DNA of 64,000 nucleotides from Phallusia mammillata (taxonomy: Eukaryota). The notes under the pieces are model-generated. The model made no database searches, was not told the origin of the DNA, and was given only the letters and a program-made list of their open reading frames with translations. This document shows, piece after piece, positions 10,479 to 57,730 of the stretch. The stretch spans positions 4,650,001 to 4,714,000 of the forward strand of contig OZ281495.1 of NCBI GenBank assembly GCA_965637545.1. Reading direction: 5' to 3'. Each line of letters begins with the position of its first letter. The first letter of the stretch is position 1. The position numbers were made by a program, and so were the translations under genes.

Positions 10479-19870
<9,392 letters not shown>

Positions 19871-21869: not shown

Positions 21870-22148
21870 ATGCCGGTTTTATCGCGACTAACACTTCTCA
21901 ATAAAATTACTGAAGATGTCATGCTAGAAGAGTGCGAAAACGATAAAGAAAAAGCAAAAACAGCTCTAACTGAAGATCTCAAAAAAGCAGTGGAATACAA
22001 AGACATAGAATATATCAACAACGTTTATCGAGAGAGTCAGCTGTCACGACAAAAAATAACCAAAGAAGCTTGGGAGACTTTCACTGCAAAAATGGACAAA
22101 AACGATAAAAGTGGTCAAGCCATTTTAAAGATAGTAACTGTTATGTAA
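21870..22148 (+). CDS. Small helical protein S1 (92 aa, unknown family; cassette 1 upstream partner)
   Basis: Intronless ORF; pyrimidine-rich acceptor TTTTTCAAG 8 nt before the ATG; shares L..L.K.TED...EC..D.E.AK..L..DL.KA....D.EY...V.RESQL..QKITK.AW..F with four other ORFs in the window. Confidence 0.85.
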   Translation: MPVLSRLTLLNKITEDVMLEECENDKEKAKTALTEDLKKAVEYKDIEYINNVYRESQLSRQKITKEAWETFTAKMDKNDKSGQAILKIVTVM

Positions 22149-22859
22149 AATAGGATAGGTCTGTTGCCAGAAAGTTTGGATGTTTTTGGTGTACAAAAAA
22201 CGACATAGAATTTCGTAAGTTAATAGTAGGTTTGTCTATGTGACGGTTTGCCAGTTTATAACCTTTAACCCCGCAAGGAGGTTTGTGGGTAATAAACGAT
22301 TAAAACCGAAATGGAATACCCAAATGCACTTAAAAATGAGTTTAAATTACTCGCGTATGTGATGTGATGTAAAGGTATTTTTTGTTTGTTTCCGAATTTT
22401 TTGTTTCATTTTTTCGTGTGTGTATATTTTCCTGCCGTTATAAACCATTTTTCGAAACTCAGGATCATCAAATACAATATACTATGACCTGCTGAGAGCG
22501 ATTTGCACTTAAGATATTTTACTTGTGTACAGACAAAAAGTGAAAAAAAATGTTTTGGTGTTTAATGATGCAAATGTCGGCAAATAGACGTAAAAAGCGA
22601 CACGCTTCTCCAAACGCTCATACCGTCATCAGTGATATTAGGGGCCACACTAGTTATACCCCTTTATAACGACTTGAGTCACATAGTTTTAAAGGTTTGC
22701 CGCTAACGTTTAAATTATAAAAGCATGTCGCCTTTTACGTCTATTTGGGCTAGAATTTTCGTGTTCCTATGTTGTAGTTTTTTTGTGTTTTATCGATGTT
22801 TCCATTTTGTGTTTACCAATGTTCAAAAAAATATTTTTTTAAGGAAAATTAGATACAAA

Positions 22860-24595
22860 ATGGCGAGTGTAGAAGGTCCGTTACTAAAACTTTATGACAT
22901 CATTTTCGGAACAATTGTTCCATGGTGGGAAACACTGTTAATGCTTTTCATATTTATTCTGTTTCTGATTGGACAAACAACTGACAATTACAAACCGGGC
23001 AAAGAGGAAGATCTGCTTTCATGTTGCAGAATAATTACAGGTGCGTAGTATTTAAATCAGAGGTGAGCAACCTTTGTTACTGTAGGGCCAATTACAAATG
23101 TCAAAATTAGACCACCCCTGATTTAAATGCTGCATGATATTACAGATTTTTGAGCTGTCTTGTCTTTTAGTTTTTTACCAAAGTATTTAACTGGTGCTTT
23201 GTATTGCAGATCCTCCTATTACACCTGTCGGAGGAAATCGCTGTAATAACTTTACCTCTTGCTGTTCTGTTAACTCCACCAAAGAAAGGTATAATATAAA
23301 ACTCGGTGAGTGCTGTGCTTTCTGCAACCTGGTGTACAAGTAGAAGTAAGCATTTGTTTAGCAAAGATTTATTTTAGACATTTCGTTTCCGGCACAAACT
23401 TCGTCTGACCTCACATGCGAAAAGGATAATCTGGGTAAGTATGTTTAATGATACAATAACGGTCCAAAAAAAACTTAGACGTAAAAAGCGGCATGCGTTT
23501 GAACAATTAAGCATGTCGCTTCTTACGTTTATTTGTCCCTACTTTACGTCTATAAACTTATGAACAATCAATCAATCAATTTAGTTTATTTGTTTCAGCG
23601 CCCACGTACAATAATAAAGACGAATAACATACGGTTAAACATATAAAACAAGCGTTAAAACAAAAAGGGTGCAGCTGGAGCCACAATTGGATATTTTTGC
23701 AAGCTGACCCTATCTATTTGTATATGGCGAATTTATGTACACATTGCGATAAGTAGAAGAAAAATAATAAGCACTGCGTTATACGACATCAAATTTTTCC
23801 CATTTAATAAATAAAATATTGACATGAAAGGTTGTGAAGATAAGAACAGATCCGTATCGTGTTCCTGGGTACGACTTTCACAGAGAGTTTTAACAAGAAT
23901 TATTCCTTTTAAATAACAAACGTTATTTAGCAGATGATCATGCCCTTGTTACCTGTGTTAATCAACTTTCCTGGGTAGAACGAAACTTCGGGTATTTCAT
24001 CACAATTTTGGCCTCCGTATTTGTGTTTGTGGTTCTTGTTTGGAGACTTAATCCGGAGGCCAGACTGGTTTTGAGCGAGTGGAATTTCATATTTGAAGAG
24101 ATATATGATATTTCACTTGACGAAATTATCCAGTTTAACGACAGAATATTAAGACCCCAACAACGACGAAGAAAGATCAATGACAGATATAAAGTCTTGA
24201 ACAAAATTAAAAAAATTGTAGTAGACTCTACCAGCGGGGAGAAAAGCTGGTACGTTAAACAACTTACATCGTATGCAATAAAAATTGGCTGCACTACCAT
24301 TATCACTATTGTCCTATGTTTTTGTTGCTACAATTATGTTCACTCTAACCATCGGTGCTCTATAAAGCAATATAAACCTGGAACTTACAGTTGCATTCTA
24401 AAATCCTATGAAGCATACTGGACAAACTTTATTTTATGTTTTATAGTCTTTGTCAGCATTATAACCATGATTTGCGCCCAATGGCGTCTACATAACAAAC
24501 AATTTGGCACCCCCGACTATATGGTAATGCTGCAGTCAAAACAAAAACAAGTTCTACCCGGTATCAGACAGAGACTGACGCAACTAGAAAATTAA
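22860..24595 (+). CDS. LRRC8/pannexin-like 4-TM channel lacking LRR domain, copy A (exons 22860-23040, 23378-23434, 23931-24595; 300 aa)
   Basis: In-frame GT-AG splicing (phase 1/1). Motifs TIVPWWE (LRRC8 KPWWD), TCVNQLSWVERNFGY..VWRLNP (LRRC8A VCYENRLHWFAKYFPY..FWFKFP), and HRC..TYSC before TM4; four hydrophobic segments; stop about 35 aa after TM4. Confidence 0.85.
23058..23120. mobile_element. 63-bp hAT mini-MITE in intron 1 of channel A
   Basis: TIRs CAGAGGTGAGCAAC / GACCACCCCTG; perfect TSD ATTTAAAT. Confidence 0.8.
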
Positions 24596-24652
24596 ATAAA
24601 AAAATAACATCAAAATATCTAAAAACAATTGTTCGCGTTTGTTATACTAAAC

Positions 24653-24709
24653 CAGGAGTGTGCAACAGGCGGCCCGCGGGCCACAATCAAAAATTGTTGC
24701 ACACCCCTG
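24653..24709. mobile_element. 57-bp hAT mini-MITE
   Basis: TIRs CAGGAGTGTGCAACA / TGTTGCACACCCCTG; TSD 6/8. Confidence 0.75.
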
Positions 24710-27356
24710 CACTATACCCTCTGTGCCACGGTGTGCTTTTTATTTGCGTTGCCATAAATGTCTCGCTTAAAATTTGATTGTTTTTCTTAGGCGTATCGCC
24801 GTCTAAAAACGCCGGTATTTGTGATTTGGTATGTTTCGGAAATTTTTATCAAAATAATCAAACAAAATGAAAACTCAGTATTGCTGACTTATACGTTGAA
24901 CTATACCTTACCGCTTTTTGCTACTGTGTGAATTTTTTGAGGTGATTTGTATGTTATATTTCTTTTGAAGAAAGTGTCACAATAGAAGCGTGACGTTATG
25001 ATTATAAAGTTTAACAAACAATTTATTATTATTACTGGTGCACTGTTTACATATTTTTGAACAAAGTAAAGCTTTTGTTTGGAAATAAAGTTCATTGTGT
25101 CGTTAATATGGCGCCCTGTTAAACATAAATTTGTCCAACCACTAGCTTGTGCTACTGAGCTGTTTACTGTGTTAATCGACACCGTATTATCCCAGAAGCT
25201 TTTGTGAAACTTGTTTGTCATGTAATGACTGAAAACAAACCTGCTGACTCATGATTACCTGTTAATCTGATTAAAACCTGAGCAAAGAGAAATTTATTGT
25301 AATTGAGCACCTGAATGGAGCTCCGTATGCGTAGATCGGTTATATCCAAACTTTTTAAAATATGGTTTAATGTAAAATTGTTTGTAGCTCCTCGTGTTTA
25401 ATTGCAAAGGCATTTATTGATTGGTCATGAGCTTTTTACTACCACATACAAAGTAACAGCCTCTAATATAAAACTTTGCTGTGGGTTACAAAAAGCCCTG
25501 CTGTCCAAAAAAAAAAACGTTTTCTGCTGGATTGTGCTTCACAGTGTCAAAAGCAGCGTCGCACACAAAGGATGTAAAAAAGACTAACCAGGCAATGCAA
25601 CTTTACAACATGATAATTAATCATTTCAATCCTCAATTCAATATATGCAACAAAGTTTTAGAAAAACGAATATGTTTCAAAAAAGCGTATTAACTTCTGC
25701 AAAAGTTGTACAGTCGGTAGATGACGCAAGAGAAAAAGTTATGCAGTCAATAGATACTGAGTTTTTCGCTATAAAGCACGTCAGTATTCCAGTGAATTAA
25801 TGCAGTCGCGGCTGATGCTTCACTATGAACACTGCAACGATTCTTGCCAATGCTCATTTTTCTTTCAATATTGTGTTAGCATGTTTGCGGGTTTTTTTTT
25901 GTAGAAGCCGTTCTTGTCCTTTTTGGAGCACACGCGCGTTGATTGTCACATTCCCACGCTTGCAAAAGCCTTTCTGAGGCGTGTTCCGCGCTGTAGTTCG
26001 ATAGCGTTTCATTCTGTTTGAGAGGGGCGTTGTGCACGTTTTGCCCTACACTTGTAACTTAGTGAAACCTGTAAATGACAGCTTTAAAGCTGTTGGAAGA
26101 ATCACAAAACCCTAACAAACGTTTGTTAGTAAACGCATCAGCTGTTTTGTTGTTATTGTACGTTTGCTTGAGTGTAAACAAGTTTGTTGAAGGATCTGGA
26201 AACTGTTTTAATAACAGACATGTATGATCCGTAAGCTGTGCTGTAGGTTTAAACTTGTTAACATGTCACCAGTTAGATCTAATTGATGATTACGACCAGA
26301 TTAGATGAGAACTTGAAAGCACTAGTTAAAAGAGGAAGGCGCGATGTTTCAAATGGCGAACAACTTTTTGTGCATTACAGAAGTGAGTGTAAGGAAACTG
26401 TAGAGTTATTGACAGAACCTGTCTGTATGACACGCCAAATGATAAACTAAATACTATTTTACAAACAATCTATCAAACTGAACTTGGCGGACAATATTAT
26501 GTATCCTTATTTATACACTCAAAAACCTCTTCTTTCAATTTTTTATCAACATTTATAATTTGAATTGTAATCAAACAACTATTTGAATGGGCCCATTTTG
26601 ACCTGTGATTCCTGGAAACTAGGCAAAATATCGATTGCGCTTTCTAACTGCATGCATCGATAAAATACATCAATTTAAATATTAATGTTTAGAAAACAAT
26701 TTCAAAATCATCTATATGCACAATTTATATACTCCCCCTTGGGTACCACTTTTAGACACTGCGTTAATATTTTAAATATAACACGACAAAGTTAAACGTG
26801 ATCAATTTGAATAACACAAAGTTAAACGTGTTCAATTTGCGTGGTGGATATATGACAAACAGTTTTCGTACAAGATTGTTTTAACTGGAAGTCTTGTTTA
26901 ATCGTTACACAGCAACTACTAGAAATTCGAGAACAAAACCATATGATTTGTTTGTTTTGAATTAGTACAACTAACGTAGTGTATACCACCCTGTTATGCC
27001 TTTTTGCTGTTGACATTCTACAACTGTAAGCGGCGGACGGGTTTATATTGGTGACTTTTGTTTTGCTACAAGTGTTATTGTTTGTCGTTATCACGTAAAC
27101 CAATATTCCCATACAAAAAAGAGAAGTTTTAGGGAATACCGTAGTGATTCGCATCCCAGTGTCAATCTTCTTTGTTTGATGCAAAACCTTCTTCACTGAT
27201 GTAGACGAAGGTAAACCTGAGTTGAATAACAAGCTATGTTACCAATATTAGCAAAACCACTCGCTATAAAGCAGAGTATTTCCCAACAGATTCAGTCATA
27301 GGAATTGGTTGGTCGAGTTGTCGTTGTGGAAGGTAATAACTGTTTCAAACTTTTCA

Positions 27357-27460
27357 ACTGAAGATTGCTAAACGAGTGCGGAAACAACAATGAAAAAGCA
27401 AAACAATCTCTTGTTAAGGACCTCGAAAGGCAGTGACATTTGAAGGCACCAAATGTCTCG
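27357..27460 (+). pseudogene. Frameshifted fragment of a small-protein (S-family) gene, paralog of S2
   Basis: ACTGAAGAT..GAGTGCGGAAACAACAATGAAAAAGCAAAACAATCTCTTGTTAAGGACCTCGAAAGGCAGTG aligns to S2 (TED..EC...EKAKQSLVKDLE.AV) with indels; upstream about 26940-27340 is homologous to about 28670-29070. Confidence 0.8.
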
Positions 27461-27784
27461 GGTTCAAAACGCGTTTCTTAAATTAAAACCTAAGAATAAA
27501 ACGCTACTCATTACATTTGCGCAAGATTCTTTATATTTCTTTATCTTTATAAATATGCTTTGTTTAAGATTTCCTTGACCTTTTTACACCAGCTATGAAT
27601 CTGTCACATTTACTACTTTGGCTATGGTATGAATTTGTAGATCTTCAGTGGGTCATGTTTAATATTATTTTCAGTATTTAGCGTAAAAGCAGTGTAACTT
27701 GTTTCTGGTTTTTCTGGTTTTCTGGATTTTTCTGGTAAAATCTACTCTTTTTCATCATGTTCTTTGACAAAAAATGCCCTAAAG

Positions 27785-27891
27785 CATCGGTTCCCAACCT
27801 GTGGGTCGCGACTCCAACTGGGACTGCCTGACAATTTGCCAGGGGTCGCCTAAGGCATGGCTAACGACACAAGAAAGGTTGGGAACCGCTG
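27785..27891. mobile_element. hAT-type MITE
   Basis: TIRs CATCGGTTCCCAACC / GGTTGGGAACCGCTG; perfect TSD CCCTAAAG. Confidence 0.85.
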
Positions 27892-29071
27892 CCCTAAAGC
27901 CTGTTGTACAGATTTGTTTTTGGCAGTCGCCGCTACACAGCGCAAAAGAGCAATCATTGCGGCAGTTTTAGGTATTAATTACGAAGTACGAAAGTGGGAT
28001 CATTGTTAATTTTTACTGCATTAATTTTACCACTGGCAACAGATTTCATAAACCTAGCACGTGGATGCAATCAAAATTAGAAGGTGGCGTAATGTTTGGT
28101 AAAAATGAGACGAAATTAAAACAATTTAGACATAGAACAGAAACAGCTGCAAATAAATACCTTTGTGTAACAGGTCACTTAAACCTGTTCCTGGTACTAT
28201 AAAATGGGACGAACTGTTGTGTATAAATAAGTGGTTTTGTTAAGTTTCTCTGGTGCCTGGCACCAATCCCGGCAGCGCAAACCAATTGCACGTTTATATT
28301 CGAGTACTGAGTGAACCTGTTACACTATTTGTTTTCAGTTTTTTATCATGTCATTGTTTTCAAATCCAGCCGCGTGCACAAAACGCTCTGCTTTTTCCTA
28401 AATATTGATATTAGCACAAAATCACAATAATATTATCACTTAGATGCATGTTGGCACGCAAAGTCATTATGACGTGGAAATAACAAGTAAATTGGCACGT
28501 TTCGCTCAAAAGGTTGGCGACCCCAGGTCTGGTGCAATCCAAACAACTGGTATTATTTATACCTGATTCATGAAACAACAGGGAAGCAAGTACAGTTTCC
28601 CTACAAGGTTGTTTTTACTGCTGCAAGTTGCGCAATCATGACAGCTCACGGACAAAAACGAGAACAAAACCATATTATTTGTTTGTTTAAAATCATTACA
28701 ACTACGTAACCAACCCTGCTATTGTGCTTTTTTGTTTTGACATTCTCTACAATTGTTAGCGTCAGGCAGGTTTGTAAAGTCGGACTTGGTTACAAGCGTC
28801 ACTGGTTGTCGTTACACCTCAGAATGTTGGGAGTACGGAAGTGATAATCGCATTCCAGTTTATAGTAAAATTAACCAATCATTATCCTCCTGTTTTGTAC
28901 AAAAACTTTAACACTGATGTGGGCCACACCAAAAAAAAACTTCGAGCGAGGGTTAAATTATAAGCCACATGTGACCATAGCAACAAACCACTCGCTAAAA
29001 AAGCAAAGAGATTTTCCTGAGAGCTTCAGTCGCAGAAACAAGAAGGTTATTGTGGTGATAACGTTGTCGCC

Positions 29072-29359
29072 ATGGAAGTTAACAAACGTTTGAGACTTCT
29101 CAATAAAATTACTGAAGATGTCAAGCCAGAAGAGTGCAAATATGACAAGGAAAAAGCAAAACAATCTCTTGTTAAAGATCTCGAAAAAGCAGTGGAGTTC
29201 AAAGACACCGAATATCTCAGCAACGTTTACAGGGAGAGTCAGCTGTTCCGACAAAAAATAGCTAAAGAAGCTTGGGATACTTTCACGGCAAACATGGCTA
29301 AAAGCGACGAAAACCGCAAGGCTTTTCAAGCAATTTTACAGACATGCATTGTTGCTTGA
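29072..29359 (+). CDS. Small helical protein S2 (95 aa; cassette 2), C-terminal CaaX-like CIVA
   Basis: Intact ORF, close paralog of S1 (LLNKITEDV..EEC..DKEKAK..L..DL.KAVE.KD.EY..NVYRESQL.RQKI.KEAW.TFTA.M). Confidence 0.85.
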   Translation: MEVNKRLRLLNKITEDVKPEECKYDKEKAKQSLVKDLEKAVEFKDTEYLSNVYRESQLFRQKIAKEAWDTFTANMAKSDENRKAFQAILQTCIVA

Positions 29360-29615
29360 GCAGTTCTCATATTTACATATGTGTTAATTAAATGCTGATA
29401 CTAGCCCTTACTAATCAATGCAGCTTTACGTCATGTATTTGGAAACGGGAACATATACTTTGTGTGTTTAAGAGTTTACTGCATTTATCACAAAAATGTC
29501 AACACTTTGTTGTGTAATTAGATTTTATATTTACTGTTCTTTTTACCTGGTATTGTGTGCTCTATATGTGGAGCAATACGGTTTTTCACCGACATAAAAA
29601 AACGTTGAATAAAAC

Positions 29616-29850
29616 ATGTCTATAGACATAGTTGAAAAAACATTACTGAAACTTTATGACATCATTTTTGGAACAATTGTTCCTTGGTGGGAAACGCTTT
29701 TCATGCTTGCTATATTTATTTTGTTCCTGATTGGACACACAACTGACAACTACATCCCGGGATCAGAAAAAAATCTTCTCATTATTTTAAACTCCATGTA
29801 ACCATCGATCTTTTCTTAATCTGCTGTGAAATTTCAAACAATACTCTCGA
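29616..29850 (+). pseudogene. Truncated LRRC8/pannexin-like channel copy B (exon 1 only)
   Basis: KLYDIIFGTIVPWWETLFML.IFILFLIG.TTDNY nearly identical to copy A. An insertion of about 40 nt with a stop at 29801 separates NLL from TGCTGT (CC). No exon 2/3 before S3 begins. Confidence 0.8.
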
Positions 29851-29973
29851 TATGAGACCTTAAAAACTTTGAAGCTTGTTTAGGCTTAACAATGAAAATT
29901 AATGCTTCGTTTTGCAGACTATTTCTCCATTTTAACAATGCCTGTGTACGTGTAAGTGGGACACAGAATCGAG

Positions 29974-30264
29974 ATGCAAGCTAATGCCTGTCTGTCACTA
30001 CTGGAAATGATCACAGAAGACATCATACTAAAAGAGTACAACAACAAAGATGATGATGCGACCGAATCTTTTGTCGCCGATTTGGAAAAAGCCTGGAATT
30101 TGAAAGATATACAATACATAGCCTATGTTGTGCAAGAGAGTCAACTAGAGCGGCAGAAAATAACTGGTGCAGCCCTCAAAAAGTTCCTTAAAAAAATCGG
30201 AGAAGACAATAAGAAAATACTGCTTCAGAAAGTGAATGAAATAGGTTCTGTGATGGTCATGTAA
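29974..30264 (+). CDS. Small helical protein S3 (96 aa from the first in-frame ATG; cassette 3)
   Basis: Divergent member: LSLLEMITED...DLEKA...KDIQYI..VVQESQLERQKIT; acceptor TTTTGCAG near 29918. Confidence 0.8.
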   Translation: MQANACLSLLEMITEDIILKEYNNKDDDATESFVADLEKAWNLKDIQYIAYVVQESQLERQKITGAALKKFLKKIGEDNKKILLQKVNEIGSVMVM

Positions 30265-31050
30265 AACATTGATTGAAACGTTTATAGCTTAAAGACAACT
30301 TACTTGTCCGAATGTAGATTTTCAGCCACAGTTAAAACTGTGTTTGCATCCATGCCGAAACCCTTTGGTGGACATATACTGATGTAAAATATGTTAAAAC
30401 ACTCTTCATGTTCAAATGTTACTTAAAGGCCGCCTCAGCAGGTCTTTGTAATGTTCCGCTGTAAGTTCGTTCAAAATTGTAAAAACAAATGTCAAAACTT
30501 ATGCGGCTAATTGCTTTTAGCTACAAATTAGCGTCGCTTATTTGCTGGTCTTCTTGCTTTATTTCTTTGAAAATAACCGCTGTAAATGATAAAACGTTGA
30601 AATTTTTTATACCAATACGTTTGTCTTGTGTATTTTGTTTACAAATTAATTTTAAAATAGTGCGTGTCTAAAACATATGTACGTTATACACTGATAACCC
30701 TTTGTTTTAAGTATCAAACTTGATCCCAACCTCGATAACCCGACCGCAAGTGTCAGGCATTTCTTCATCGACACGTTTTTTGAATCAGGGTATTTCCCTG
30801 AACCTGGCGTACCAATTAATTTAGTGAGCTATTTTGCCGCGTCACCCTTTTTTATTAAACTTCAAAACTCCCGCTGCAGTAAGCCTTGTTTTATTGTTTA
30901 CAGCCCAAAATTTCTTCATTTGCGTGCTATTTAGTTTTATGTAGTTTCTTGTTATGGATTTCAGTGCATACTAAATTCCTCAGATATACGCAAAGCACAA
31001 TGTATTCATTCGTGTAATTACTCATATTTAGTTTTGTTTCAGGCAGCAAA

Positions 31051-32511
31051 ATGCCAGTCATAGACGATTTTTCATTAAAACTGTTTGAATACCCATTTTT
31101 GACAATAGTTCCCTGGTGGGAAACATGTTTGATGTTCTTTCTTGTCGTTATGCTAGTTCTCGGGCAAATGGCTGAAAACTACATTCCTGGATCCGAAGAC
31201 AAACTTCTTTCGTGTTGCAAAACTAACTTGGGTATTTATTTTTTCATATTGTGGATCATACGGTAAACATAAAAATACAGTAATAAAATTAAGTAACTAT
31301 AAAGCGTAACACATTTAGAACCATAAGTTTATCAAAAAAGTTAAGGTATTTAAACACAAAGTTACAAACAAGCGTGGCTTTCGGAATCAAAAAACATTAA
31401 TCAGTAAAATAACGGTAACCTGCCATCCTGTCTAGTAGTTTATTTTGGAGATTTTGTTTTCATGCAATTATAATTGTTTGTTAAAAGTTAACCATCCATT
31501 AACACAATTGTTCATCAATAATATGTATTGCAGTTGTCTGTGCGGAAGATCAATGCGATCACATACCTACAAGCAACATATTTAATTCAAGTGCAACATA
31601 CGACTTCTGCGAAAGCACAACACCAGGTTCGTTGACATGAAAGCTGAACTTCAACTTTTTATGCAACAAACTACCTTAAGACCCAAATATTTTTCAGATT
31701 TTATTTACGTGAAGTTGTCCTCATTGTCCGATCGAAACTACCTAACAAATCACCTGTTTTGTCGAGATGAATCTATCGGTTTGTTCTTCTGTTTTAGTGG
31801 TTCCACACAAACCTACTATCTACCTGCTTATCCAAGTTTATTGTCGTTTTTTCAGACCCCCATGCCATTGCTTCCTGTGTTTTTCAACTCTCCTGGATAG
31901 AACGGAACTTTGAGTGTTTCATAACTATATTGGCTCTCTTGATGGGTACCCTTGTTTTTAGTTGGAGATTACATCCGGAGGCACGGTTTGTCATGAGCGG
32001 ATGGAAGTTTGTGTATGAGCATCTAGACACCATTTCAGTAGATCAAGTAGAAAAATTTAACACCAATCGATTTAAGCCACAAGAAAAACGAAAAAGTAAT
32101 AAAGTTAATGAACAACTGGACAAAATGAAAACAATTGTACTAAACTCTTCGTTAAACCAAAGCTCGGTTTTAATCAACTTAACCTCGTACTGTATAAAAA
32201 TTATTTTGACTGTTGCTCTTATTGTTGGTCTCGGTTTAAGTTGGTATTTTTTTCTAAAGCCCGACTATTTGTGCTACACAAAACACCATCATCCAAAAAC
32301 TTACCGTTGTATAATAAAAGCGTATAATTCCTATGTTACAGTGGCCTTTTTATCCATTTGCACTTTAACTTTCTCTTTCGCTGTTATGTTATGTGCGTGG
32401 GGACGCCTGAAAGGGCAAAAATTTGGGTCTAAAAATTACATGTTAGAAATGTTGTCAGCACAAAAACGTTTGTCTTTGAAACAAAAACAGATCGCTAACA
32501 AATTCCAATAA
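31051..32511 (+). CDS. LRRC8/pannexin-like 4-TM channel lacking LRR domain, copy C (exons 31051-31231, 31534-31626, 31856-32511; 309 aa)
   Basis: In-frame splicing; exon 1 is 181 nt as in copy A; TIVPWWE, SCVFQLSWIERNF, WRLHP, YLC...KTYRC (LRRC8A RTYRC), QKFGS. Confidence 0.85.
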
Positions 32512-38656: not shown

Positions 38657-40408
38657 TTGTTTTATCAGAACAGGGAAAGTGTAAAAAGCGTTGGACTAAT
38701 CTTGGGAAAATACACAAACCCAAAATTGCAGGCATATACCTACATGTCGCTGCTGAATAAAATGCCGGATGGAAAGTTTGGAAACAAAGTGTATGGAAGA
38801 TATTCAGATGTTGCTGACTTGGAAAGGAAATTGGATTGGAGGGAATGTCACTTTATTCATAATATCGGCGATGAGAAACCACATGCAATAACGCAATACA
38901 TAAGAAAGGAGTTGAAAATTAAGGAGGATTCAACGAGCGATGAAGAAATCCAGGCACCTAATTTGGTCTGCCCTATTCCACACATTAGGAGGGCGGATTG
39001 GTATGATATTTCTAATTCATGGTTCTTTCAAAGGAACGCATGCTTGTCAAAAATTGAAGGAGATCCAACAAGCGATGAAGAAATCCAGGCATCTAATTTG
39101 GTCTGCCCTATTCCACATATTAGGAAGGCGGATTCGTTTGATGTTTCTAATTCATGGTTCTTTCAAAGGAACGCATCCTTGTCAAAAATTGAAGAAGATT
39201 CAACAAGCGATGAAGAAAACCAGGCACCTAATTTGATCTGTCTTGTTCCACACATTAGGAAGGCGGAGTCGTTTGATGTTTCTAATTCATGGTTCTTTCA
39301 AAGGAACTCATGCTTGTCAAAAATTGAAGAAGATTCAACAAGCGATGAAGAAATCCGGGCACCTGATTTGGTCTGTCCTGTTCCACACATTAGGAAGGCG
39401 AAGTCGTTTGATATTTCTAATTCATGGTTCTTTCAAAGGAACGCATCCTTGTCAACAATTGAAGAAGATTCAACAAGCGATGAAGAAATCCGGGCACCTA
39501 ATTTGATCTGCCCTGTTCCACACATTAGGAAGGCGGATTCGTATGATATTTCTAATTCATGGTTCTTTCAAAGGAACGCATGCTTGTCAAAAATTGAAGG
39601 AGATTCAACAAGCGATGAAGAAATCCAAGCATCTAATTTGGTCTGCCCTATTCCACACATTAGGAGGGCGGATTCGTTTGATATTTCTAATTCATGGTTC
39701 TTTCAAAGGAACTCATGCTTGTCAAAAATTGAAGAAGATTCAACAAGCGATGAAGAAATCCAGGCACCTAATTTGGTCTGCCATATTCCACACATTAGGA
39801 AGGCGGAGTCGTTTGATGTTTCTAATTCATGGTTCTTTCAAAGGAACGCATCCTTGTCAAAAATTGAAGAAGATTCAACAAGCGATGAAGAAAACCAGGC
39901 ACCTAATTTGATCTGTCTTGTTCCACACATTAGGAATGCGGAATCGTTTGATATTTCTAATTCGTGGTTCTTTCAAAGGAACGCATGCTTGTCAAAAATT
40001 GAAGAAGATTCAACAAGCAATAAAGAAATCCAGGCACCTAATTTGGTCTGCCCTATTCCACACATTAGGAAGGCGAAGTCGTTTGATGTTTCTAATTCAT
40101 GGTTCTTTCAAAGGAACGCATGCTTGTCGAAAATTAAAGAAGATTCAACAAGCGATGAAGAAATCCAGGCACCTAATTTGATCTGTCCTGTTCCACACAT
40201 TAGGAAGGCGAAGTCGTTTGATATTTCTAATTCGTGGTTCGTTCAAAGGAACGCATGCTTGTCAAAAATTGAAGAAGATTCAACAAGCAATGAAGAAATT
40301 CAGGCACCTAGTTTAGTCTGCCCTATTCCACACATTAGGAAGGCGGATTCGTTTGATGTTTCTAATTCATGGTTCTTTCAAAGGAACGCATTCTTGTCCA
40401 AAATTTGA
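38657..40408 (+). CDS. Unknown protein or exon with 11 tandem 45-aa repeats (EEDSTSDEEIQAPNLVCPIPHIRKADSFDVSNSWFFQRNACLSKI)
   Basis: 583-codon ORF with 88 unique codons followed by 11 in-frame units; possible acceptor TTTTATCAG near 38666, so the start may be an upstream exon. Confidence 0.55.
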   Translation: MFYQNRESVKSVGLILGKYTNPKLQAYTYMSLLNKMPDGKFGNKVYGRYSDVADLERKLDWRECHFIHNIGDEKPHAITQYIRKELKIKEDSTSDEEIQAPNLVCPIPHIRRADWYDISNSWFFQRNACLSKIEGDPTSDEEIQASNLVCPIPHIRKADSFDVSNSWFFQRNASLSKIEEDSTSDEENQAPNLICLVPHIRKAESFDVSNSWFFQRNSCLSKIEEDSTSDEEIRAPDLVCPVPHIRKAKSFDISNSWFFQRNASLSTIEEDSTSDEEIRAPNLICPVPHIRKADSYDISNSWFFQRNACLSKIEGDSTSDEEIQASNLVCPIPHIRRADSFDISNSWFFQRNSCLSKIEEDSTSDEEIQAPNLVCHIPHIRKAESFDVSNSWFFQRNASLSKIEEDSTSDEENQAPNLICLVPHIRNAESFDISNSWFFQRNACLSKIEEDSTSNKEIQAPNLVCPIPHIRKAKSFDVSNSWFFQRNACLSKIKEDSTSDEEIQAPNLICPVPHIRKAKSFDISNSWFVQRNACLSKIEEDSTSNEEIQAPSLVCPIPHIRKADSFDVSNSWFFQRNAFLSKI

Positions 40409-40618
40409 AATTTTTATAAAAAGGAATAAGGAAATCCAGGCCCTTATTTTGGTCTGCCCTATTCCACACATTAGGAAGGCGGATTCGTTTGATGTTTCTA
40501 ATTCATGGTTCTTTCAAAGGAACGCATTCTTGTCCAAAATTTGAAATTTTTATAAAGAGGAATAAGGAAATCCAGGCCCTTATTTTGGTCTGCCCTATTC
40601 TACACGTTAGGAAAGCGG
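38921..40618 (+). repeat. 135-bp tandem repeat, 11 full in-frame copies plus about 1.5 degenerate 3' copies
   Basis: Units start at 38921, 39056, 39191 ... 40271 with exact 135-bp spacing; a T insertion creates TGA at 40406. Confidence 0.97.
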
Positions 40619-48402: not shown

Positions 48403-48593
48403 AAACTGGTTTATTGTACCGACACTCATTTTTGTGTAAACCAAGTGAAGTATATCTTTATCGCCTCGCCTTGGGATAAAATTGTAGTTTACTAAAATAA
48501 CCCGTAAAATGTTATCATATTAGTGTAAATGCACTTAAAATGCCACGCATAATTTGTGTTTGCACTTAATTGTTTTCTTTGTGTTCGCATTCT

Positions 48594-48617
48594 AATAAAA
48601 CAACACGCATTTTTCAG
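48594..48617 (+). promoter_or_regulatory. AATAAA poly(A) signal immediately upstream of the splice acceptor of channel D (same arrangement at 56727-56752 for channel E)
   Basis: AATAAA at 48594-48599 then TTTTTCAG ending at 48617, ATG at 48643; AATAAA at 56727-56732, AG at 56751-56752, ATG at 56778. Confidence 0.6.
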
Positions 48618-48642
48618 GTTAGGTGTATTGCATAAGCACAAA

Positions 48643-49849
48643 ATGGCAACAGTACCAGACCCTTTACTTAAGTTGTATGATCATATACTTGGTACAATAG
48701 TCCCATGGTGGGAAATACTACTGATACTGGCATTTTTTGTTTTGTTGCTAATTGGACAGTCAACTGATGACTACATACCTGGATCAGAAGACAAGTTTAT
48801 TTTCTGCCATAACGGCTCTGAAAGTAGGTGCATGTTGATGGTTTGTGTATATAACTTTCGTTATGGCTAAATATAAAAATACGTTGCGAAAAAAACAAAA
48901 TCAGTCGATGCAAAATTTCGGAATACATGTTCTCCTAAAATTGGCATCGTACTGTAAAATCATGGAGTAAAATAGCAATAAAAATAATAAAAAATACGTT
49001 TTTTTCTTACACGCTTTTAATATGGCAGTTTTCGTCAAGTTCTAGTTGTGGTTTCCCAAAAAGAACTGTTTGTTTCTATGAAATTTTACGTTCCAAGTTT
49101 AAATATTATGAACAAATCAATAATATACTGTATAAGCGAGTTTTTAAAAAAAAAAAAACTGTACTACTAATTAAAACTATTTTATTCCAATAGTGCTCGA
49201 AGACGCCACACTTTGCATTGATCAAGTGCACTGGCTGGATCGAAACTTTGGCAGCCTGATTATCACGTTGACGTTTTTATTTGGTTTTCTAAATTTTATT
49301 TGGCGATTGCACCCACAAGCAAGACATGTGTTGGCAGAATGGAACTTTGTATTTCAACAAATGCCACAAATATCTCCCAATGACATAATACAGTATAACA
49401 CAGTTTTCGGAAAGCCTTCAAACAAGCCTAGAAAGAACCGACCCCAATTCGATGTAATACAAAAATTGAAAACTATTGTAACCAAATCTCACGATGTTGG
49501 TGCTAATCTAAGTCTCATTACTTCGTATTATACCAAATCGGAAGTTACGGGCATTATCGCATTTGTTTTGGCGATTTGCTTATGGTTAGTTCATAGTTCC
49601 TTTACATGTGTACTTTCTTACACACCCCAAGTCTTTCATTGTATTCTAAAATCTTATGAAAGCTATTGTACAAACTCGGGTTTTTGTTTTTGTGTTCTCT
49701 TATTATCTTATGTAATAATGTGTATTGCTGATAAACGGTTAAAACAGTGGAAATTTGGGTCACCAAGGTACATGTTGGAAATGTTGTCAAAGCAAGGCAT
49801 GTCTGATGCTGATCGAAACAAAGCTTTACAACTTTTGGCTGAAAACTAA
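48643..49849 (+). CDS. LRRC8/pannexin-like 4-TM channel lacking LRR domain, copy D (exons 48643-48823, 49194-49849; 278 aa)
   Basis: 181-nt exon 1, phase-1 junction in frame; TIVPWWE, LCIDQVHWLDRNFG, WRLHP, FTC...VFHCILKSY, WKFGSP. Confidence 0.85.
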
Positions 49850-50902
49850 ATAACAGTGTTATTTTTTCTTGAAATGCCATTGAGTGAAACACGTAGGTAA
49901 AACATTTCACTGTCACTTTTTCTTTAGATTTGATCCACGTTGAAACCAAAGTATTGTATAGTTTCAACACAATATGTGTCACAATAAATAGTTGTACTAT
50001 TTATTTTGCTGACTTTTTGTTGGAATCAGAAATCATTCCAAGACTGAGAAAAATAATTCTTTCGGTAATTAACAGTCTTCGCTTAAGTTCGCTCAGTTTA
50101 TGCATGTGTATGGAAAAAATCACTACGAAACAACTGATCAGTTTGGTTGAATACCTCGGTAGCTTTCACTCAGACTGGAATAAATTACCCACTCATTAGA
50201 GTTTCTTTTGTCACTGTTGTTTGCAAAATCAATATTTATACCTACATAAATATCTGCAACAACAATGGCTCTGTTTGTTCTTTCCTTCCTGTATTTTCTA
50301 TTCACTGTCATCTTGCTTCGAGTTAAAAATGAGACAGACAACAATACTGCAATGCTTTTATCCAGGTAACACCTTCTATGTTTGCTTGTTCGCTTGATGA
50401 CACTTTTCACATGAAGTGTGAAAATAGAACTACTAACATAATAACTCACAACAGTGTAAGTCTGTTAAGTGCCGATAAGTGGCGTAAAGAGCACAGTTAT
50501 TTTAATTAACAGTGAGAATGGAATAGGGTTAGCAATTATATTGAACGTTAAGTTTGAAGGATGGCTTCATTGTTTTATTATTATTACAAAACTTTCCCCC
50601 AACCCTAGCAGCCCCAACGGTCAACAATTCCACAAATTGTTTGTAAATATTAGCAAAAGCTCTTTGATTCATCCATCGGTATTTAGCAAACATCTTAACA
50701 CTTTTACTTTGGCGCTCCCTTTAAGTGTGCAGTCATTCGTGAACGTTCTATAGTTGGTGTTGGTTGGAGGTGGAAGTACATTGTTGTGCTGGTATGAATT
50801 AGAAAAATAAACAATTGTACATGACGTATTCGTGCGTTCCTCCGCCCAGCGCCAAAAAAAAAAAACAATGAACCAGACAAACTTTGCAAACTATATTTTT
50901 AC

Positions 50903-51335
50903 TAGTGATGCACCGAACCCTCCTAAAAAGGTTCGGGCCGAAACCGAATATTCGGCCTCTTCGGCCATGAGGCCGAATAATTTCGGCCGAATCAGGCCGA
51001 ACCTAAAATCCCCTTTCTTATGGATGTTTTCAACTGAACTTTGTGTTGTTGGTGCGAGTGAACTCAATTTTGACAAACTAAAATCACTTTCACATTGTGT
51101 AAGATTTACTAAACATCTAAGTTTTTGCCGACACAGTGGCTCTTATAGATACAACAAATAGTTAATTTATGATGTTTCGTATGGGCGAAAATGAAATCTA
51201 AGGCCTTAATTCCATGCAATAAAAAAGTTCGGTTTCGGCCGAATTTTCAAAAAAGTTCGGGCCGAAACCGAAACATTGGAAAACAACGGATTCGGCCGAA
51301 ATGTTTCGGCCAACCGAAACTTCGGTGCATCACTA
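50903..51335. mobile_element. hAT-type MITE with TTCGGCC repeats
   Basis: Perfect TIRs TAGTGATGCACCGAA / TTCGGTGCATCACTA; perfect TSD ATTTTTAC. Confidence 0.92.
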
Positions 51336-52199
51336 ATTTTTACCGTTTTACCCGCCGAATTAGTAAAAGCAATCTGGATTTTGCTTTTTTCTTTATTGTT
51401 ACGTAACAAAGCGCCTGCCATGATTGGTGCAATCTAATCACGTTTCACAGTTTCTTTCTGTGCTGTAAGCAGCCTTCTTTTTTAGAAATATGTGTAAGCT
51501 TACTGATCAATTTATTGTGGGCGGCTACGTGCAAAAGAATGCTAAACAGTAATGAACAGTGATTAGTTTTTAACCTGGTTTTACAACAAGTTGGTACGTT
51601 TGATTGTATGTAATTTTAATGTCGTGCTAACATTGTGGTGAATAGTGAAGTATTGACTTTCCTAGTGTCACATGTTTCTGTGTGTAACTTTATTGGCCAT
51701 TTTGTGTGTGCATATTACGTTAGATGATTATGACACTTTTCTGTTCGCTTTCACAGAGAACCAATGCTGTTCACAAAACGAAGGAATATACCCGTCAGGC
51801 AGTGTTGATTTCAAAACGATTTGGGCAGCCCTTGTGCAGTGGTCGGTGCAGATCCAGGCAGCACAGATTGTGAAATAAATTAAGGCCACTATAGAGTAAA
51901 CATATAATATTGGTTAAAATTTGTTCTAAATGAGCAGAGCTTTTCTTATTGAAGCCCCGGTAAAGAACATAAGTTTATGACCCGCTGTTGCCCATGTAAG
52001 AATCATATCAGCTTTTGGTAAAATCGGAAACTAAAAACGACCCCAGCAAACATTAAAATAACGTAAACCAAAAATATTAAAGTAATTCTTGGCAACATCT
52101 CTGCTCCACAGGAGTTTGTACGAATTTAAGACTTAACAAACAAACATTGCCACCAACCAGTAAAAAATCAGAAAATCACATGCAAAGCTTGTATCCAGG

Positions 52200-52709
52200 T
52201 AACACATTCTATTTTTTTTTGTTCGCTAGATGTCGCTCACACTACATCACGTTTTAATTGCTTCAGGTAACCGACGAACTTATGGTTTGCATTTAAAGTG
52301 TTGTTCGCCGACAGAAGAAAACAATAAAACAAACACACATAAAGCAAACAAAGGCGATTTTGAGTTAATAAAACTTTGTTACTGAGATTTGAAGCGTTAA
52401 AGTAGGATACGTAGGACTAACATAGAAGAATAAATGGCATTAAAGGTAAGACTTAGTTCACTTTTTAAATTTGTCAGTCCTAAATAATAGTATTTGTAGT
52501 TTATGTTACAGTACGAGATGATAGCGATACATACAACAACACTCTTTTCCTGAAAAACAAGTTGAACCAAACTTAATGAAAACCACATAACACCGTTTTT
52601 TGCCGTTTCCGTATCGTTCTCTTCTTTCTATGACCCCCTGGAAAGTTTGACGCTGTATATCATCCTGAGGAACGTCATAAATTCGAGAAACGTCAAAAGT
52701 CTCAGACGC
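52200..52709 (-). pseudogene. Decayed duplicate of the last exon and 3' flank of the EF-hand gene
   Basis: TTTTTTTGCAG|GCGTCTGAGAC..GAATTTATGACGTTCCTCAGGATGATATACAGCGTCAAACTTTCC matches exon 61242-61097 with TGG->TGA and an insertion; downstream flank matches about 60620-61090. Confidence 0.8.
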
Positions 52710-52808
52710 CTGCAAAAAAAAGTGTTATTTTCATTATCGTCATAATTTATTTGTGTTCCTATTAAAGAAATATTTACCACTTTACAACCGACATGGAATA
52801 TACCGGCA

Positions 52809-53016
52809 CAGAGTTGTAAGTCGGGTCGGGTTGGACCAGACCTCATTTCAAACAGCCCTAAAACGCCTTTGTCTATTGTGTTTGTTGTCTTGGTCTTTCC
52901 TGGTGCTATAATGTATAGGCCTGTCAATCAAACTTTCGGGCCTAAACGGCTTCTCAAAAACGAATGGGATTCGGGCCGGGTTTCGGGCTCCAATTTCAGG
53001 GCCGTTTACAACTCTG
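52809..53016. mobile_element. hAT-type MITE
   Basis: TIRs CAGAGTTGTAA / TTACAACTCTG; TSD TACCGGCA/TACTGGTA. Confidence 0.75.
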
Positions 53017-53842
53017 TACTGGTAAGTGCAAACCATTACATGTTATGTGAAAGTTTACACTTTTCAGCAGACAGTCTTTTTTTTCACTGGGTTTGAAGCC
53101 AAAAAGCTCCCGAAGACGAAACCTAAAGATTTGTTTGATATGGGTTAAGCGACCTAGACCATTCAGCCAAGTTCTTTTCCGAATGGGTCGTGTTTGCAAA
53201 TGTAACCTGACTAGAAACATTATGCATTGTCTGTGGGCAATGATTATTGTATTAGGTATTTCCTTTCATACTGAAATAACATCATTTAGTGGAAACCACT
53301 TTAATTTCCAAGCAGGTGCTTGGTCATTGTGGATGTTCTTCCTTCGTGGTGTTTGTATAGGTTCCATTCCGTTTCGGACTCAAATCAGCTATGACGTTAC
53401 TGGATAGCACGTGACTGCTCATGTTTATCGTGATGTCATGCAGCATCGCGATTCAACACTTGTTGGCATATTTCTTGGAGAAGCGCAACCAGTGGTTTTG
53501 TCGGGTTTTTAGTAGCAATAGGCCTATATCGGTATTGGCTGTTGATTGTTAAGGAGGTCAAAATCTCTTTTTACCCCGCCAGTTGCATGTTTTGTTTGTT
53601 TTCTGTTGATCCGTTAAATCATTTTTCATTTGATCGTTTCGCCTTTGGGCAATCAGTGACTTTAGTTAAGTATAATCCATCATATACCATTTCCAGTGCA
53701 TTATTAAGCGGTCAGAATGGGGTGGCAAGCGTCTTGGCAACTTCATGTAATGACACAAAGCCTTGCTGATAACGAATTTATTAAACATACATTTTTAATT
53801 GGTACTTAAGCTCATTTTTGTATGTGTTGTTTTAACATTTAA

Positions 53843-54538
53843 GGCCCGTTTACACTATGCGTATCGCGCTCGCTCAGACCTGCGTAAGTTTGTTTGTTTC
53901 ATTTTTTCTGTCTGGTCTCGCGCTTTTTTTCGGGCGCTCAAGTCTCGTAGAAATGAGCGAGCGATCGCCTGCCGAGCGTTTTTCTGCGTATCAAGCTGCT
54001 TGAACCTGCGCAAACGGTTTGTGTTATCGCTGTGTGCGGGTTTGTGATTTGAAAACGTTGGCTCATTTGCCAAAAATAAATGATGACACGCTATTTGCCT
54101 TCAATTTAAGTATTTATTACATGGTTACGATTGCATGTTATGTTTTATTGTGTTTAAATATTGTAATTAAGTGCATTTAAAATGTACATTTACCCTAGCA
54201 CAGCGGACTATATGTCATAGAAACATGAAAATGAGATAAACATGCCACCAATCTATACAACAACATCCAGAGCTATCCTGTATGATTACCAAGATGCAAA
54301 ATCATGTTTACTAACAAAATATGATTTAATTTAGATTGATACAAAGCTTTTTCGATCTAAAATAGGTAACAATAAATTTATGTGGTAATTTATGGTCATC
54401 GACATTTGCTGTGAGCTGAAAAATACGTCTAGTATATTATTTAGTAAGCTTAGGTACGCACCGATAATCGCAGTGTAAACGGAAGGGGTCGCAAGGTAAG
54501 GTTAGGTTAGGCGCCACTAAGCATAGTGTAAACGGACC
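53843..54538. mobile_element. Non-autonomous DNA transposon (PIF/Harbinger-like termini; superfamily uncertain)
   Basis: TIRs GGCCCGTTTACACTATGC / GCATAGTGTAAACGGACC flanked by TAA/TTT. Confidence 0.65.
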
Positions 54539-56206
54539 TTTACAAGCTGAGAAGCAATAGCTTTTTCGACATGACACGAGTCTTGGTATCATGATAATCT
54601 GGCAACGCAACACCTCTGGTGATGTTTTTAATTAGAATGTTACATCAGCTCAAGCGCAGTGGCTCAAGCAATAACAAGTAATTTTTGCATTTACATTATA
54701 CGTAGCATGTCAAACCTACGCATGTACTGGCTCATGTGTCATGTCTTGGAAAAAAAGAGGGATTGACTACCGAGATTTTTTCCGAGTGTTCCGAGCCTTT
54801 TCAAATTCAATTACTTATCACATACCTATAATTTTATGTGGTGTTTTTTGTATGTTTGAATATTGTAATTAGGTCTAGTTTTTCGCAAAAAGAATATATA
54901 AAATAACAAATGTAAGTTTTGTAGCTACAACAATGTCAAAGAAAAAGAGGTGCAGTGCTAAGCAGAAAAGTTTTACCCGCACATTTGAACAGGAGAACTT
55001 TATTTAAATCAGGGGTTCTTAACCTTTCATAGACTGTGTCCCCCTAAGTAACCCTTCAGGACCCTGCTTATTAAAAATGCAGATGAAAAACTCAATACTT
55101 ATAAAATCCAGGATCCATCAGGATAACAGATGAGTGGTATAAACTTTAAGACATTGAACTGCTCCTGCGTACCTCAACATGGATAACGCCACTAAAACAA
55201 TACGTTGCGAAATTTCAGTGAAATGTCGAAACAAGAATAGTTAACGGCAAATCAACTTTAGTTCCTGAATCGTTAAAGTTTATTAGCAGTTGAAGTAAAA
55301 GTAACATTATTTGTGGTGGCCTTAATACAGACACGAAGATTAAGTGAGAAATAGTCGATTTAATCAAGAATACGAATGTCCAATAACGCAATAAATCGAA
55401 ATTTAAGTAATATTTGGATATCCCCATCATTCAACGCATTGCGAAAGATAAGCGGGCTACATCACATTGGACAAATGGCTTAATGTCTTTTGGTGGATGT
55501 TTCTAGTGAGCCTACACCTGAAACTCCCATGTAATACAGCTCGTGTCCCCTCTGGGGAGTCGAGAAAGCGAGCGTTTTTTTGTAAAATGTGCGCGAAATG
55601 GACAGGTCAAAATGTGCAGGTGCCAAAATGTGCAGGTCAAAATATAAAATGTTGAACGGTAAAAAAAGAAAGAAAAAACCCAAATTAAAATAAGATAAGG
55701 AAATAAATTTTCTGATAATGCTAAAAAGCAGTGCCCATTCTGCACGACATTTTTGTTAAAAATAAGTGTCATGTTAACATTTTGACCTGCACATTTTTGC
55801 GCACATTGTGCAAGTATTCGTCATTAGCCCTGTTGTCCCTGGGGGCGATGGGTCCTGATTAACAACCGCTAATTTAAATGGATCAAGTTGAAATTGTGTT
55901 TATTAAGGTTATAGTAAGTAAAAAAATGTGTATGATTTTATTATTTTAAGAACGTAATAGGTTTTTAAATAAACTATCATTTGTCGCTTTATCCCTTTTT
56001 GCTGTCCCAAAATATCAAAACAAACCTTACATTTTTTAAACAGCACCATTGCATATTTGAGTCACGATCCGCCAGTAGTCACTTTTAATGGCGTCATAAT
56101 GTTAGAAAGTATTACTAATATTGCGTTACTGACAACAACAACGTTTTATTTATAGGAATTACCTAACCAACTTTAAACGAACTTGGTAAATAATTTGTCC
56201 TAAGCT

Positions 56207-56503
56207 ATGCAGGTTTACGAGTCCTTGGCAGCTTTGCAAAGGTTGACTGAGCATCGCAAACTAAAAGCTTTTAATGATGACGTGGAAATGGCGAAAAAAT
56301 CCCTATGTGATGATCTGAGCAAAGCTGCAGAATTTGACGATTTGGAATACATCAGCAACATTCACAGGGAAGCACAACTCGAACAACAGAAAATTACCAA
56401 ACAAGCGTGGGAAATGTTCGAGAAGAGTTTTGCAAACAACACAAAGATCGGAAAAAACTTTAAAACTTGGGCATCGTATTATATTCCGCAAAGTGTCGAA
56501 TAG
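56207..56503 (+). CDS. Small helical protein S5 (98 aa; cassette 5), close paralog of S4
   Basis: Intact ORF; homologous acceptor ending at 56155, 51 nt before the ATG. Confidence 0.85.
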   Translation: MQVYESLAALQRLTEHRKLKAFNDDVEMAKKSLCDDLSKAAEFDDLEYISNIHREAQLEQQKITKQAWEMFEKSFANNTKIGKNFKTWASYYIPQSVE

Positions 56504-56777
56504 AACATTTTTAAACCAATGCCTTTTGCCTGTACGTTTTTCTCTAAGCGTGATATTTGCAATCTTTTTAGCCGCAAGTTTCTGCCTTTTTCCTTTACAC
56601 ACGTTTTGTGCAGGCGTTTTTCGCTTCATTCTATTATTTCCGATAAAAATTGAGTTATAATTCGGATATTATTACTGTCATGTAGAACCAAGCCTTAAAT
56701 CGCACCTTCATCGCCTAACGTTTGGTAATAAAGCAAATCATGTATTTTTCAGGTTAGGTGAATTGTATAAACACAAA

Positions 56778-57730
56778 ATGGCAACTGTACCAGACCCATT
56801 ACTTAAGTTGTATAATCATATACTTGGTACAATAGTCCCATGGTGGGAAATATTACTGATTCTGGCATTTTTTATTCTGATGCTGATTGGGCAATCAACT
56901 GATGACTATGTTCCTGGATCAGAAGACAAGTTTATTTTCTGCCATAAAACGGCTCTGAAAGTAAGTGCATGTTGATGGTTTGTTGATATACGTTGATGAT
57001 GTTTTATTCTGTAAAGTTTAAAGAGCCAAGTTTAAACATTTACAATCAATTCGTTTTTTTATCAGTGCTTAAAGACGCGATACTTTGTATTGATCAACTG
57101 CACTGGCTGGATCGAAACTTTGGCAGTGTGATTATCATGTTGGCGTTTGTATTTGGCTTCTTGAACTTTATTTGGCGATTGCACCCACAAGCAAGATATG
57201 TGTTAGAAGAATGGAATTTCGTATTTCAACAAATACCACAAATATCTCCCACCGACATAATAAAATATAATACAGCTTTCGACCAGCCTTCAGACCCAAA
57301 AAATCCTAGAGAGAACCTACCCGAATTCGATGTAATACAAAAATTAAAAACCATTGTGACCAAATCTCACGATGTTGGTTCTAATCTAAGTCTCATTACT
57401 TCGTATTATAACAAATCGGAAGTTACGGGCATTATCGCATTTGTTTTGGCGATTTGCTTATTCTTAGTTCATAGTTCTTTTACATGTGTACTTTCAGATT
57501 GCACACCCAAAGTCTTTCATTGCATTCTAAAATCTTATGAAAGCTATTGGACAAACTCAGGTTTTTGTTTTTGTGTTCTCTTTTTATCTTATGTAATAAT
57601 GTGTATCGCTGATAAACGGTTAAAACAGTGGAAATTTGGGTCACCAAGGTACATGTTGGAAATGTTATCCAAACAAGGCATGTCTGATTCAGACCGAAAC
57701 AAAGCTTTGCAATTTTTAGCAGAAAATTAA
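56778..57730 (+). CDS. LRRC8/pannexin-like channel copy E; +2 nt in exon 1 relative to D (frameshifted, or rescued by an alternative acceptor)
   Basis: Close paralog of D. Exon 1 56778-56960 is 183 nt (CATAAAACGG vs CATAACGG). The homologous acceptor ending at 57065 is then out of frame, while AGs ending at 57016 or 57025 are in frame. Confidence 0.65.

Follow-up and report, generated by a model that had tools for sequence, protein, structure and literature searches.

A tandem array of paired genes in Phallusia mammillata, best explained by amplification of a putatively co-transcribed unit

A 64,000-nt stretch of the Phallusia mammillata genome (assembly GCA_965637545.1, contig OZ281495.1, 4,650,001-4,714,000; hereafter the window, in the numbering of which all positions are given) contains an array in which a gene for a small soluble protein, denoted S, lies close upstream and on the same strand of a gene for a protein with four transmembrane (TM) segments that probably belongs to the pannexin/LRRC8/innexin superfamily and is referred to as the channel. 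Within 36 kb, the locus comprises four complete units, a fifth in which the channel gene is truncated, and an S pseudogene, which together form a birth-and-death array. The best explanation of this arrangement appears to be the tandem amplification of a co-transcribed two-gene unit, to which we assign a probability of about 0.55. The five S-channel adjacencies are copies of one ancestral adjacency and not five independent associations, and the signal that is not attributable to chance is that both open reading frames (ORFs) have remained intact under purifying selection. On our reading, the ancestral unit was a single transcription unit, either an operon or a locus with alternative processing from a shared promoter; co-duplication of the two genes would then be automatic, and the linkage would be explained more simply than by a partnership between a regulator and its channel.

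A gene pair that has survived one old duplication after another is an inexpensive genetic hint at a partner of the channel. The channel family is beyond the reach of sequence methods, appears to possess the LRRC8/pannexin fold without leucine-rich repeats (LRRs), and occurs in a chordate lineage close to the origin of LRRC8, so that it bears on the emergence of LRRC8, an origin with which a 2012 study by Abascal and Zardoya is reportedly concerned. Should the pairing prove to be only an artefact of an operon, the locus would still be a clear case of a whole operon amplified in tandem, a part of which was later homogenized alone.

Organization of the array

The S and channel copies were located by tBLASTn of the window, which is AT-rich (GC about 0.35-0.40) and has short GT-AG introns, with the S ORFs and a hand-built model of channel A as queries. 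Five intact, homologous S ORFs (92-99 aa) and five channel starts (A to E) were found, all on the + strand (Table 1), with 711, 256, 786, 240 and 274 nt, respectively, between the S stop codon and the channel ATG. An initial annotation, made from the sequence alone, had placed an S ORF 240-790 nt upstream of every channel copy on the same strand and had found no intact S ORF without a downstream channel. The spacing was confirmed for all five starts (240-786 nt), and the second statement holds for S1, S3, S4 and S5. Only channels A, C, D and E are whole, however, and because B is an out-of-phase relic of exon 1, S2 has no intact partner and the complete modules number four rather than five.

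The relic of channel B is 78% identical to A at the amino acid level over 50 aa; it retains the GT of the old donor site, but its 182 nt put this site in the wrong phase, no later exons precede S3, and S3 starts 177 nt past the relic. In the self-comparison of the window, the S pseudogene and S2 have about 470 nt of upstream flank in common, and the S and channel segments are the sole parts common to the units. Channels D and E lack exons 2 and 3 of A and C, which encode a Cys-rich part in the middle of the first extracellular loop, and the reading frame of channel E holds only with a donor site 4 nt further on than that of D.

Table 1. Features of the S-channel array and an adjacent insertion
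Feature	Positions	Strand	Remarks
S1, 92 aa	21870-22148	+	intact ORF, single coding exon
Channel A, 332 aa	22860-24595	+	4 exons: 22860-23040, 23210-23305, 23378-23434, 23931-24595; all introns GT-AG
S pseudogene	about 27317-27460	+	start lost, frameshifts, stops; no channel relic 3' of it
S2, 95 aa	29072-29359	+	intact ORF
Channel B relic	29616-29797	+	exon 1 only
S3, 96 aa	29974-30264	+	intact ORF; most divergent S
Channel C, 336 aa	31051-32511	+	4 exons: 31051-31231, 31534-31626, 31698-31778, 31856-32511
S4, 99 aa	48103-48402	+	intact ORF
S4-D junction	48594-48617	+	AATAAA, 17 nt later CAG acceptor with T-rich tract, D ATG another 25 nt on; D/E homology tract starts here
Channel D, 278 aa	48643-49849	+	2 exons: 48643-48823, 49194-49849
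S5, 98 aa	56207-56503	+	intact ORF
S5-E junction	56727-56752	+	AATAAA, then T-rich tract and CAG acceptor, 25-26 nt before E ATG
Channel E, 283 aa	56778-57730	+	2 exons: 56778-56964, 57066-57730
MITE-like insertion, 157 nt	22586-22742		inverted ends; widens S1-A spacer

Junctions between the S and channel genes

In units D and E, the poly(A) signal AATAAA is located 17 nt 5' of the AG of a pyrimidine tract. Because only about 25 nt separate this acceptor, and about 50 nt the poly(A) signal, from the channel ATG, the two junctions leave no room for a promoter. An AATAAA is also present 8 nt 5' of the ATG of the B relic (position 29608). In Ciona operons, the upstream gene's 3' end abuts the trans-splice acceptor of the downstream gene, without intercistronic DNA (PMC1488885), and the array resembles these spliced leader (SL) operons in that its genes are close neighbors on the same strand and, in D and E, the acceptor AG of the channel adjoins the poly(A) signal of S. 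It differs from them in the use of a canonical AATAAA, in the A and C spacers of more than 700 nt, and in that neither SL nor dicistronic RNA was seen in the RNA runs. A further difference is that here tandem amplification took in the whole unit and the two cistrons diverged in parallel, a situation for which we found no description in the literature consulted.

Under this scheme, S and the channel would be produced from one primary transcript initiated upstream of S, and this transcript could be resolved by formation of the S 3' end together with trans-splicing of an SL to the acceptor next to it; a shared promoter combined with alternative splicing or polyadenylation would be an equally serviceable route. 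Any duplicate with an expressed channel would necessarily bring S along, and co-transcription would place S and the channel in the same cells, making a functional link plausible, for example with S at the cytosolic face of the channel.

Several observations count against co-transcription. The A and C units, with their long spacers, show no poly(A) signal at the acceptor and may have promoters of their own. The poly(A) signal-acceptor motifs of D and E lie inside one homology tract and thus amount to a single observation, to which B is added, and most Ciona operons are devoid of a canonical AATAAA (PMC1488885). The RNA data are likewise unsupportive: RNA-labelled runs contained about 0.00 of the words of the S4-D and S2-C stretches, four RNA runs compared with positions 53500-58500 yielded no S5 reads, and among all RNA runs examined, no S, dicistronic precursor or spliced leader on a channel was seen, the sole contig being a join of exon 1 to the last exon that does not include the 5' end.

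This contig, of 183 nt and from run X11, joins the two exons at the predicted D-type sites (56909-57198). It differs from E at 15 of 132 bases, with 5 of the 13 listed variants equal to D, and comes from a third D/E-like gene outside the window or from a divergent strain or haplotype. The D/E subfamily is therefore transcribed and spliced as modelled, an observation that is silent on S and on co-transcription. Two other runs, X1 and X2, contained about 0.82 of the words of both tested stretches (S4-D and S2-C), spacers and introns included; because the non-coding parts were present too, these runs were taken for DNA and are silent on expression. The presumed SL sequence was not found in the window.

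In the spacer between S3 and channel C, positions 30854-30904 hold an ATTAAA, a CAG 20 nt later and then a second pyrimidine-tract acceptor. This segment could be a displaced S3 3' end or acceptor, or an extra exon of the 5' untranslated region of C.

Congruence and divergence of the two genes

The branching orders of the two families agree, with ((S1,S2),(S4,S5)),S3 matching ((A,B),(D,E)),C, and the grouping also holds by identity; for five taxa, this is a 1-in-15 match, and genes that lie side by side would be expected to agree in this way. Comparisons between the three lineages are saturated at silent sites. Within the first pair, the ages of the two genes agree (dS of 0.53-0.61 for S1/S2 vs 0.70 for A/B). 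Within the youngest pair, they do not: S4 and S5 differ at 13 of 22 four-fold degenerate sites (dS 1.37), whereas D and E differ at 14 of 88 (dS 0.30), that is, S4/S5 are about four times more diverged than D/E at silent sites. Among conserved residues, synonymous codon changes number 28 of 76 in S4/S5 vs 37 of 239 in D/E (Fisher p = 1.4e-4). Moreover, the homology between the D and E units breaks past S at 48404, resumes exactly at the AATAAA at 48593, and extends to 50082. From this gap and the discordant silent-site ages, it follows that S took no part when the D/E channel segment (48593-50082) was converted or re-duplicated, long after the split of S4 and S5. The relationships described in the initial annotation as congruent are thus congruent in topology but not in depth, and its proposal that the pair was duplicated and kept as a unit from old to recent events agrees with the presence of S beside every intact channel, whereas the youngest pair has not behaved strictly as one unit.

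These data bear on the view that S and the channel are independent neighbors with promoters of their own, which recur side by side only because segmental duplications happened to span both. The long A and C spacers, a poly(A) signal 143 nt past the S1 stop, the unequal ages of S4/S5 and D/E, and the existence both of a relic consisting of S alone and of an S whose channel is truncated all speak for it. It has difficulty, however, with the D and E junctions and their lack of space for a promoter, with the retention of order, strand and closeness in every unit across saturated divergence, and with the restriction of the segments common to the units to S and the channel; on balance, we regard it as rather unlikely. 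A 5' coding exon of the channel mRNA or a regulatory upstream ORF (uORF), instead of a separate protein, is a very improbable identity for S. S does lie close upstream on the same strand, and in all copies the leader from the acceptor to the ATG has no in-frame stop, although it extends over 3-9 codons only. The tails of the five S ORFs are not conserved, their stops lie at differing positions, and no common position offers a GT donor that is conserved or good; each channel has its own conserved start Met; purifying selection acts at the amino acid level over about 75 S residues, unlike in a typical uORF; and S is separated from the channel by a poly(A) signal. S was accordingly rejected as a 5' coding exon of the channel on the grounds of the missing conserved donor, the differing stops and tails, and the intervening poly(A) signal. 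Co-transcription of the amplified unit thus remains the reading that we prefer over both alternatives.

The S protein

S is a genuine coding gene under purifying selection, with dN/dS of 0.08-0.42 among the copies; five open, alignable frames at saturated silent divergence are not a matter of chance. The protein has no hydrophobic or TM segment, contains 16-17 acidic and 13-19 basic residues, and has a pI of 4.9-8.5, and the AlphaFold model consists of six short helices (mean predicted local distance difference test, pLDDT, 68.8). Its earlier description as a small helical protein is upheld by these properties, namely, solubility, six predicted short helices and an ORF under selection.

No match to S was found in Pfam or among the ESM atlas features, nor with the S profile in 5.8 billion clusters (word-indexed search) or in the PDB, and S has so far been found only at this locus. 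A death-fold domain was considered, given six helices in about 90 aa, and rejected after Foldseek against the PDB and AFDB clusters and a shape search of the ESM atlas produced no hit superior to E 2.7 or a TM-score of 0.5. Derivation of S from the cytosolic loop or tail of the channel was likewise rejected (hhalign probability 0.1%). S2 ends in C-I-V-A (29345-29359), resembling a CaaX prenylation motif; this ending is absent from the other four S copies, and the candidate was dropped as not conserved. Selection on S2 was also examined for relaxation following the loss of B, and no clear asymmetry emerged, with 12 derived changes on the S2 branch vs 9 on the S1 branch.

Placement of the channel protein

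The channel copies are under purifying selection (dN/dS 0.10-0.27). Every copy has four hydrophobic segments (19-mers), with helices at the same places in the AlphaFold model, which also predicts a helical cytosolic loop, and the ORFs end about 35 aa past TM4. Four cysteines are invariant in the alignment, Cys55 and Cys120 in the first extracellular loop and Cys254 and Cys266 in the second. Pannexins and innexins have two conserved cysteines in each extracellular loop. A P-W-W motif is found at the start of TM1 and presumably resembles a motif of LRRC8.

When the channel model was compared with 350,542 PDB chains using Foldseek, the best 50 matches were all LRRC8 or pannexin chains, those of LRRC8A/C/D being the best, with no claudin, tetraspanin or other four-TM protein in these 50 (E 0.1-1.7, TM-score 0.35-0.39, for a model with mean pLDDT 48.6). 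VIA re-alignment over about 200-240 residues gave Z of 8-9.5, with INX-6 at the top (9.5), followed by PANX3 (9.3), PANX1 (9.0) and LRRC8A/C/D (8.4-9.2), although Z < 13 is not decisive for helical proteins; the identity to the structural matches is 8-16%. An ESM language-model search with the last exon of channel A retrieved Pannexin_like, pannexin and innexin clusters at 0.90-0.93, the top cluster carrying PF12534 (score 0.93, 215 shared features).

By sequence, the family is invisible. Channels A, C, D and E gave no match to PF12534 (Pannexin_like) or PF00876 (Innexin) in Pfam at E <= 10; profile and phmmer searches of the PDB produced no match, LRRC8 chains included; channel A had no match in 5.8 billion clusters (word-indexed search); and the channel profile had zero matches among 1.84 billion representatives. 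An exact look-up of seven ORFs and a search of JGI metagenome contigs for both the S and the channel families were blank, although homologue collections may be poor in tunicate data and these blanks are no proof of lineage restriction. LRR-like exons or motif clusters are absent from both strands of the window, and the possibility of hidden LRR exons downstream of the channels was accordingly rejected for the window.

Taken together, the predicted fold and the language-model search suggest that the membrane protein is a member of the pannexin/LRRC8/innexin superfamily, which we consider probable. The opposite view, that it is an unrelated, lineage-specific four-TM protein, the weak model of which resembles pannexins and LRRC8 by chance, draws on the sequence searches of Pfam, the PDB and the 1.84 billion representatives, on a fold assignment that depends on a model with pLDDT 48.6 and on Foldseek E values of 0.1 or worse, and on the ESM search with the last exon of channel D, which recovered no pannexins and reached 0.77 with unrelated clusters, D being plainly homologous to A (E 5e-41). 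A chance resemblance is nevertheless hard to reconcile with the uniform composition of the 50 best Foldseek chains, to which INX-6 is added by VIA, with the independent convergence of the ESM search on the same clusters for A, and with the 2+2 invariant loop cysteines and helical cytosolic loop, which fit the superfamily; we judge it distinctly unlikely. Of the earlier characterization as an LRR-less LRRC8/pannexin-like channel, the fold is supported by predicted-structure and language-model evidence and the missing LRRs by the ends of the ORFs and the motif scan of the window, whereas every sequence method fails to see the relationship.

The likeness to LRRC8 (VRAC/SWELL1) comprises the four-TM architecture, the first extracellular loop, which is long, the helical loop in the cytosol and, past TM4, short helices. 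The channel described here differs from LRRC8 in having no LRR domain, in stopping about 35 aa past TM4, in lacking a sequence match to PF12534 or to LRRC8 chains, and in its multi-exon gene and, in D and E, a first loop of about 30 aa. With pannexins and innexins, it shares the fold-level match, two invariant cysteines per extracellular loop, the absence of LRRs and a length of about 280-340 aa, in contrast to the missing PF00876 match, the lack of a long regulatory C-terminal tail and the identity of 8-16%. As a side reading, the LRR-less LRRC8-like genes might preserve or re-create, in a tunicate, the state of LRRC8 prior to its fusion.

Possible regulation of the channel by S

Large-pore channels (pannexins, LRRC8, innexins and CALHM) are regulated mainly by parts of their own proteins, and to our knowledge, dedicated auxiliary proteins of such channels are hardly known. 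If S acts on the channel, it would regulate a large-pore channel from the cytosol, as do the C-terminal autoinhibitory tail of Pannexin-1 and the LRR domain of LRRC8; those two elements are covalently part of the channel, however, whereas S is a separate gene product without similarity to either.

S could serve its cognate channel as a dedicated subunit in the cytosol, whether gate, plug, sensor or antidote, performing an LRR-like role in trans, with each S co-evolving with its own channel. This possibility is compatible with co-transcription, to which it adds a physical interaction, and we hold it only tentatively. It would account for the lack of an intact channel without an intact S, for purifying selection on S in all four whole units, in which duplicates should be redundant, and for the close tracking of pairwise dN between S and the channel (0.53 vs 0.55, 0.48 vs 0.52, 0.68 vs 0.63 and 0.11 vs 0.06); furthermore, S is soluble, and the channel stops shortly past TM4 with no LRR. 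Yet the tracking of rates is expected from common history alone, S2 is intact without a whole channel and without clear relaxation, the homogenization of D/E without S4/S5 is odd for tightly co-adapted pairs, S has neither a recognized fold or motif nor similarity to the channel loops, and in Ciona, members of one operon are apparently expressed independently, neither in tight coordination nor in mutual exclusion (PMC1488885). That S regulates the channel is therefore a reasonable hypothesis, although an uncertain one, with the co-retention of intact, selected S copies as its one support, and it is slightly weakened by the survival of S2 without a whole channel and by the S-independent exchange between D and E.

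In its boldest form, which we think somewhat less likely still, S would be the first case of a soluble subunit that is dedicated to a channel of the pannexin/LRRC8 superfamily and encoded by a gene of its own, each paralogue matched to its own LRR-less channel and exerting cytosolic control, and the array would be diversifying as matched pairs by birth and death. A role in immunity, cell death or allorecognition is an idea to which gene turnover is the sole pointer.

Neighboring elements in the window

The insertion that widens the S1-A spacer (Table 1) belongs to a family resembling miniature inverted-repeat transposable elements (MITE-like), found at 15640-15757, 16484-16500, 20713-20932, 22586-22742 and 23477-23530, with 17-nt inverted ends of the type AGACGTAAAAAGCGACA (9 matches vs 0.01 expected). 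The last of these is a 54-nt mini-copy within the third intron of channel A.

At 53839-54542 and 55596-55813, RNA contigs from runs X3 and X8 accumulate at up to 90x word depth and with many mismatches and loose ends, a picture that suggests transcription of a multi-copy repeat and not of a gene at this site.

On the + strand, positions 38657-40618 consist of 12.6 copies of a 135-nt unit with 91% identity, one frame of which is open for 583 aa; the product is a 45-aa repeat, rich in D, E and S, with a conserved Cys and an S-N-S-W-F-F motif, and its Pfam matches look like repeat artefacts. On the - strand, an exon at 6216-6644 clearly matches calcium-activated chloride channel regulators (CLCA) in their N-terminal domain (E 1e-12), and the array is therefore flanked by a different chloride-channel-related gene.

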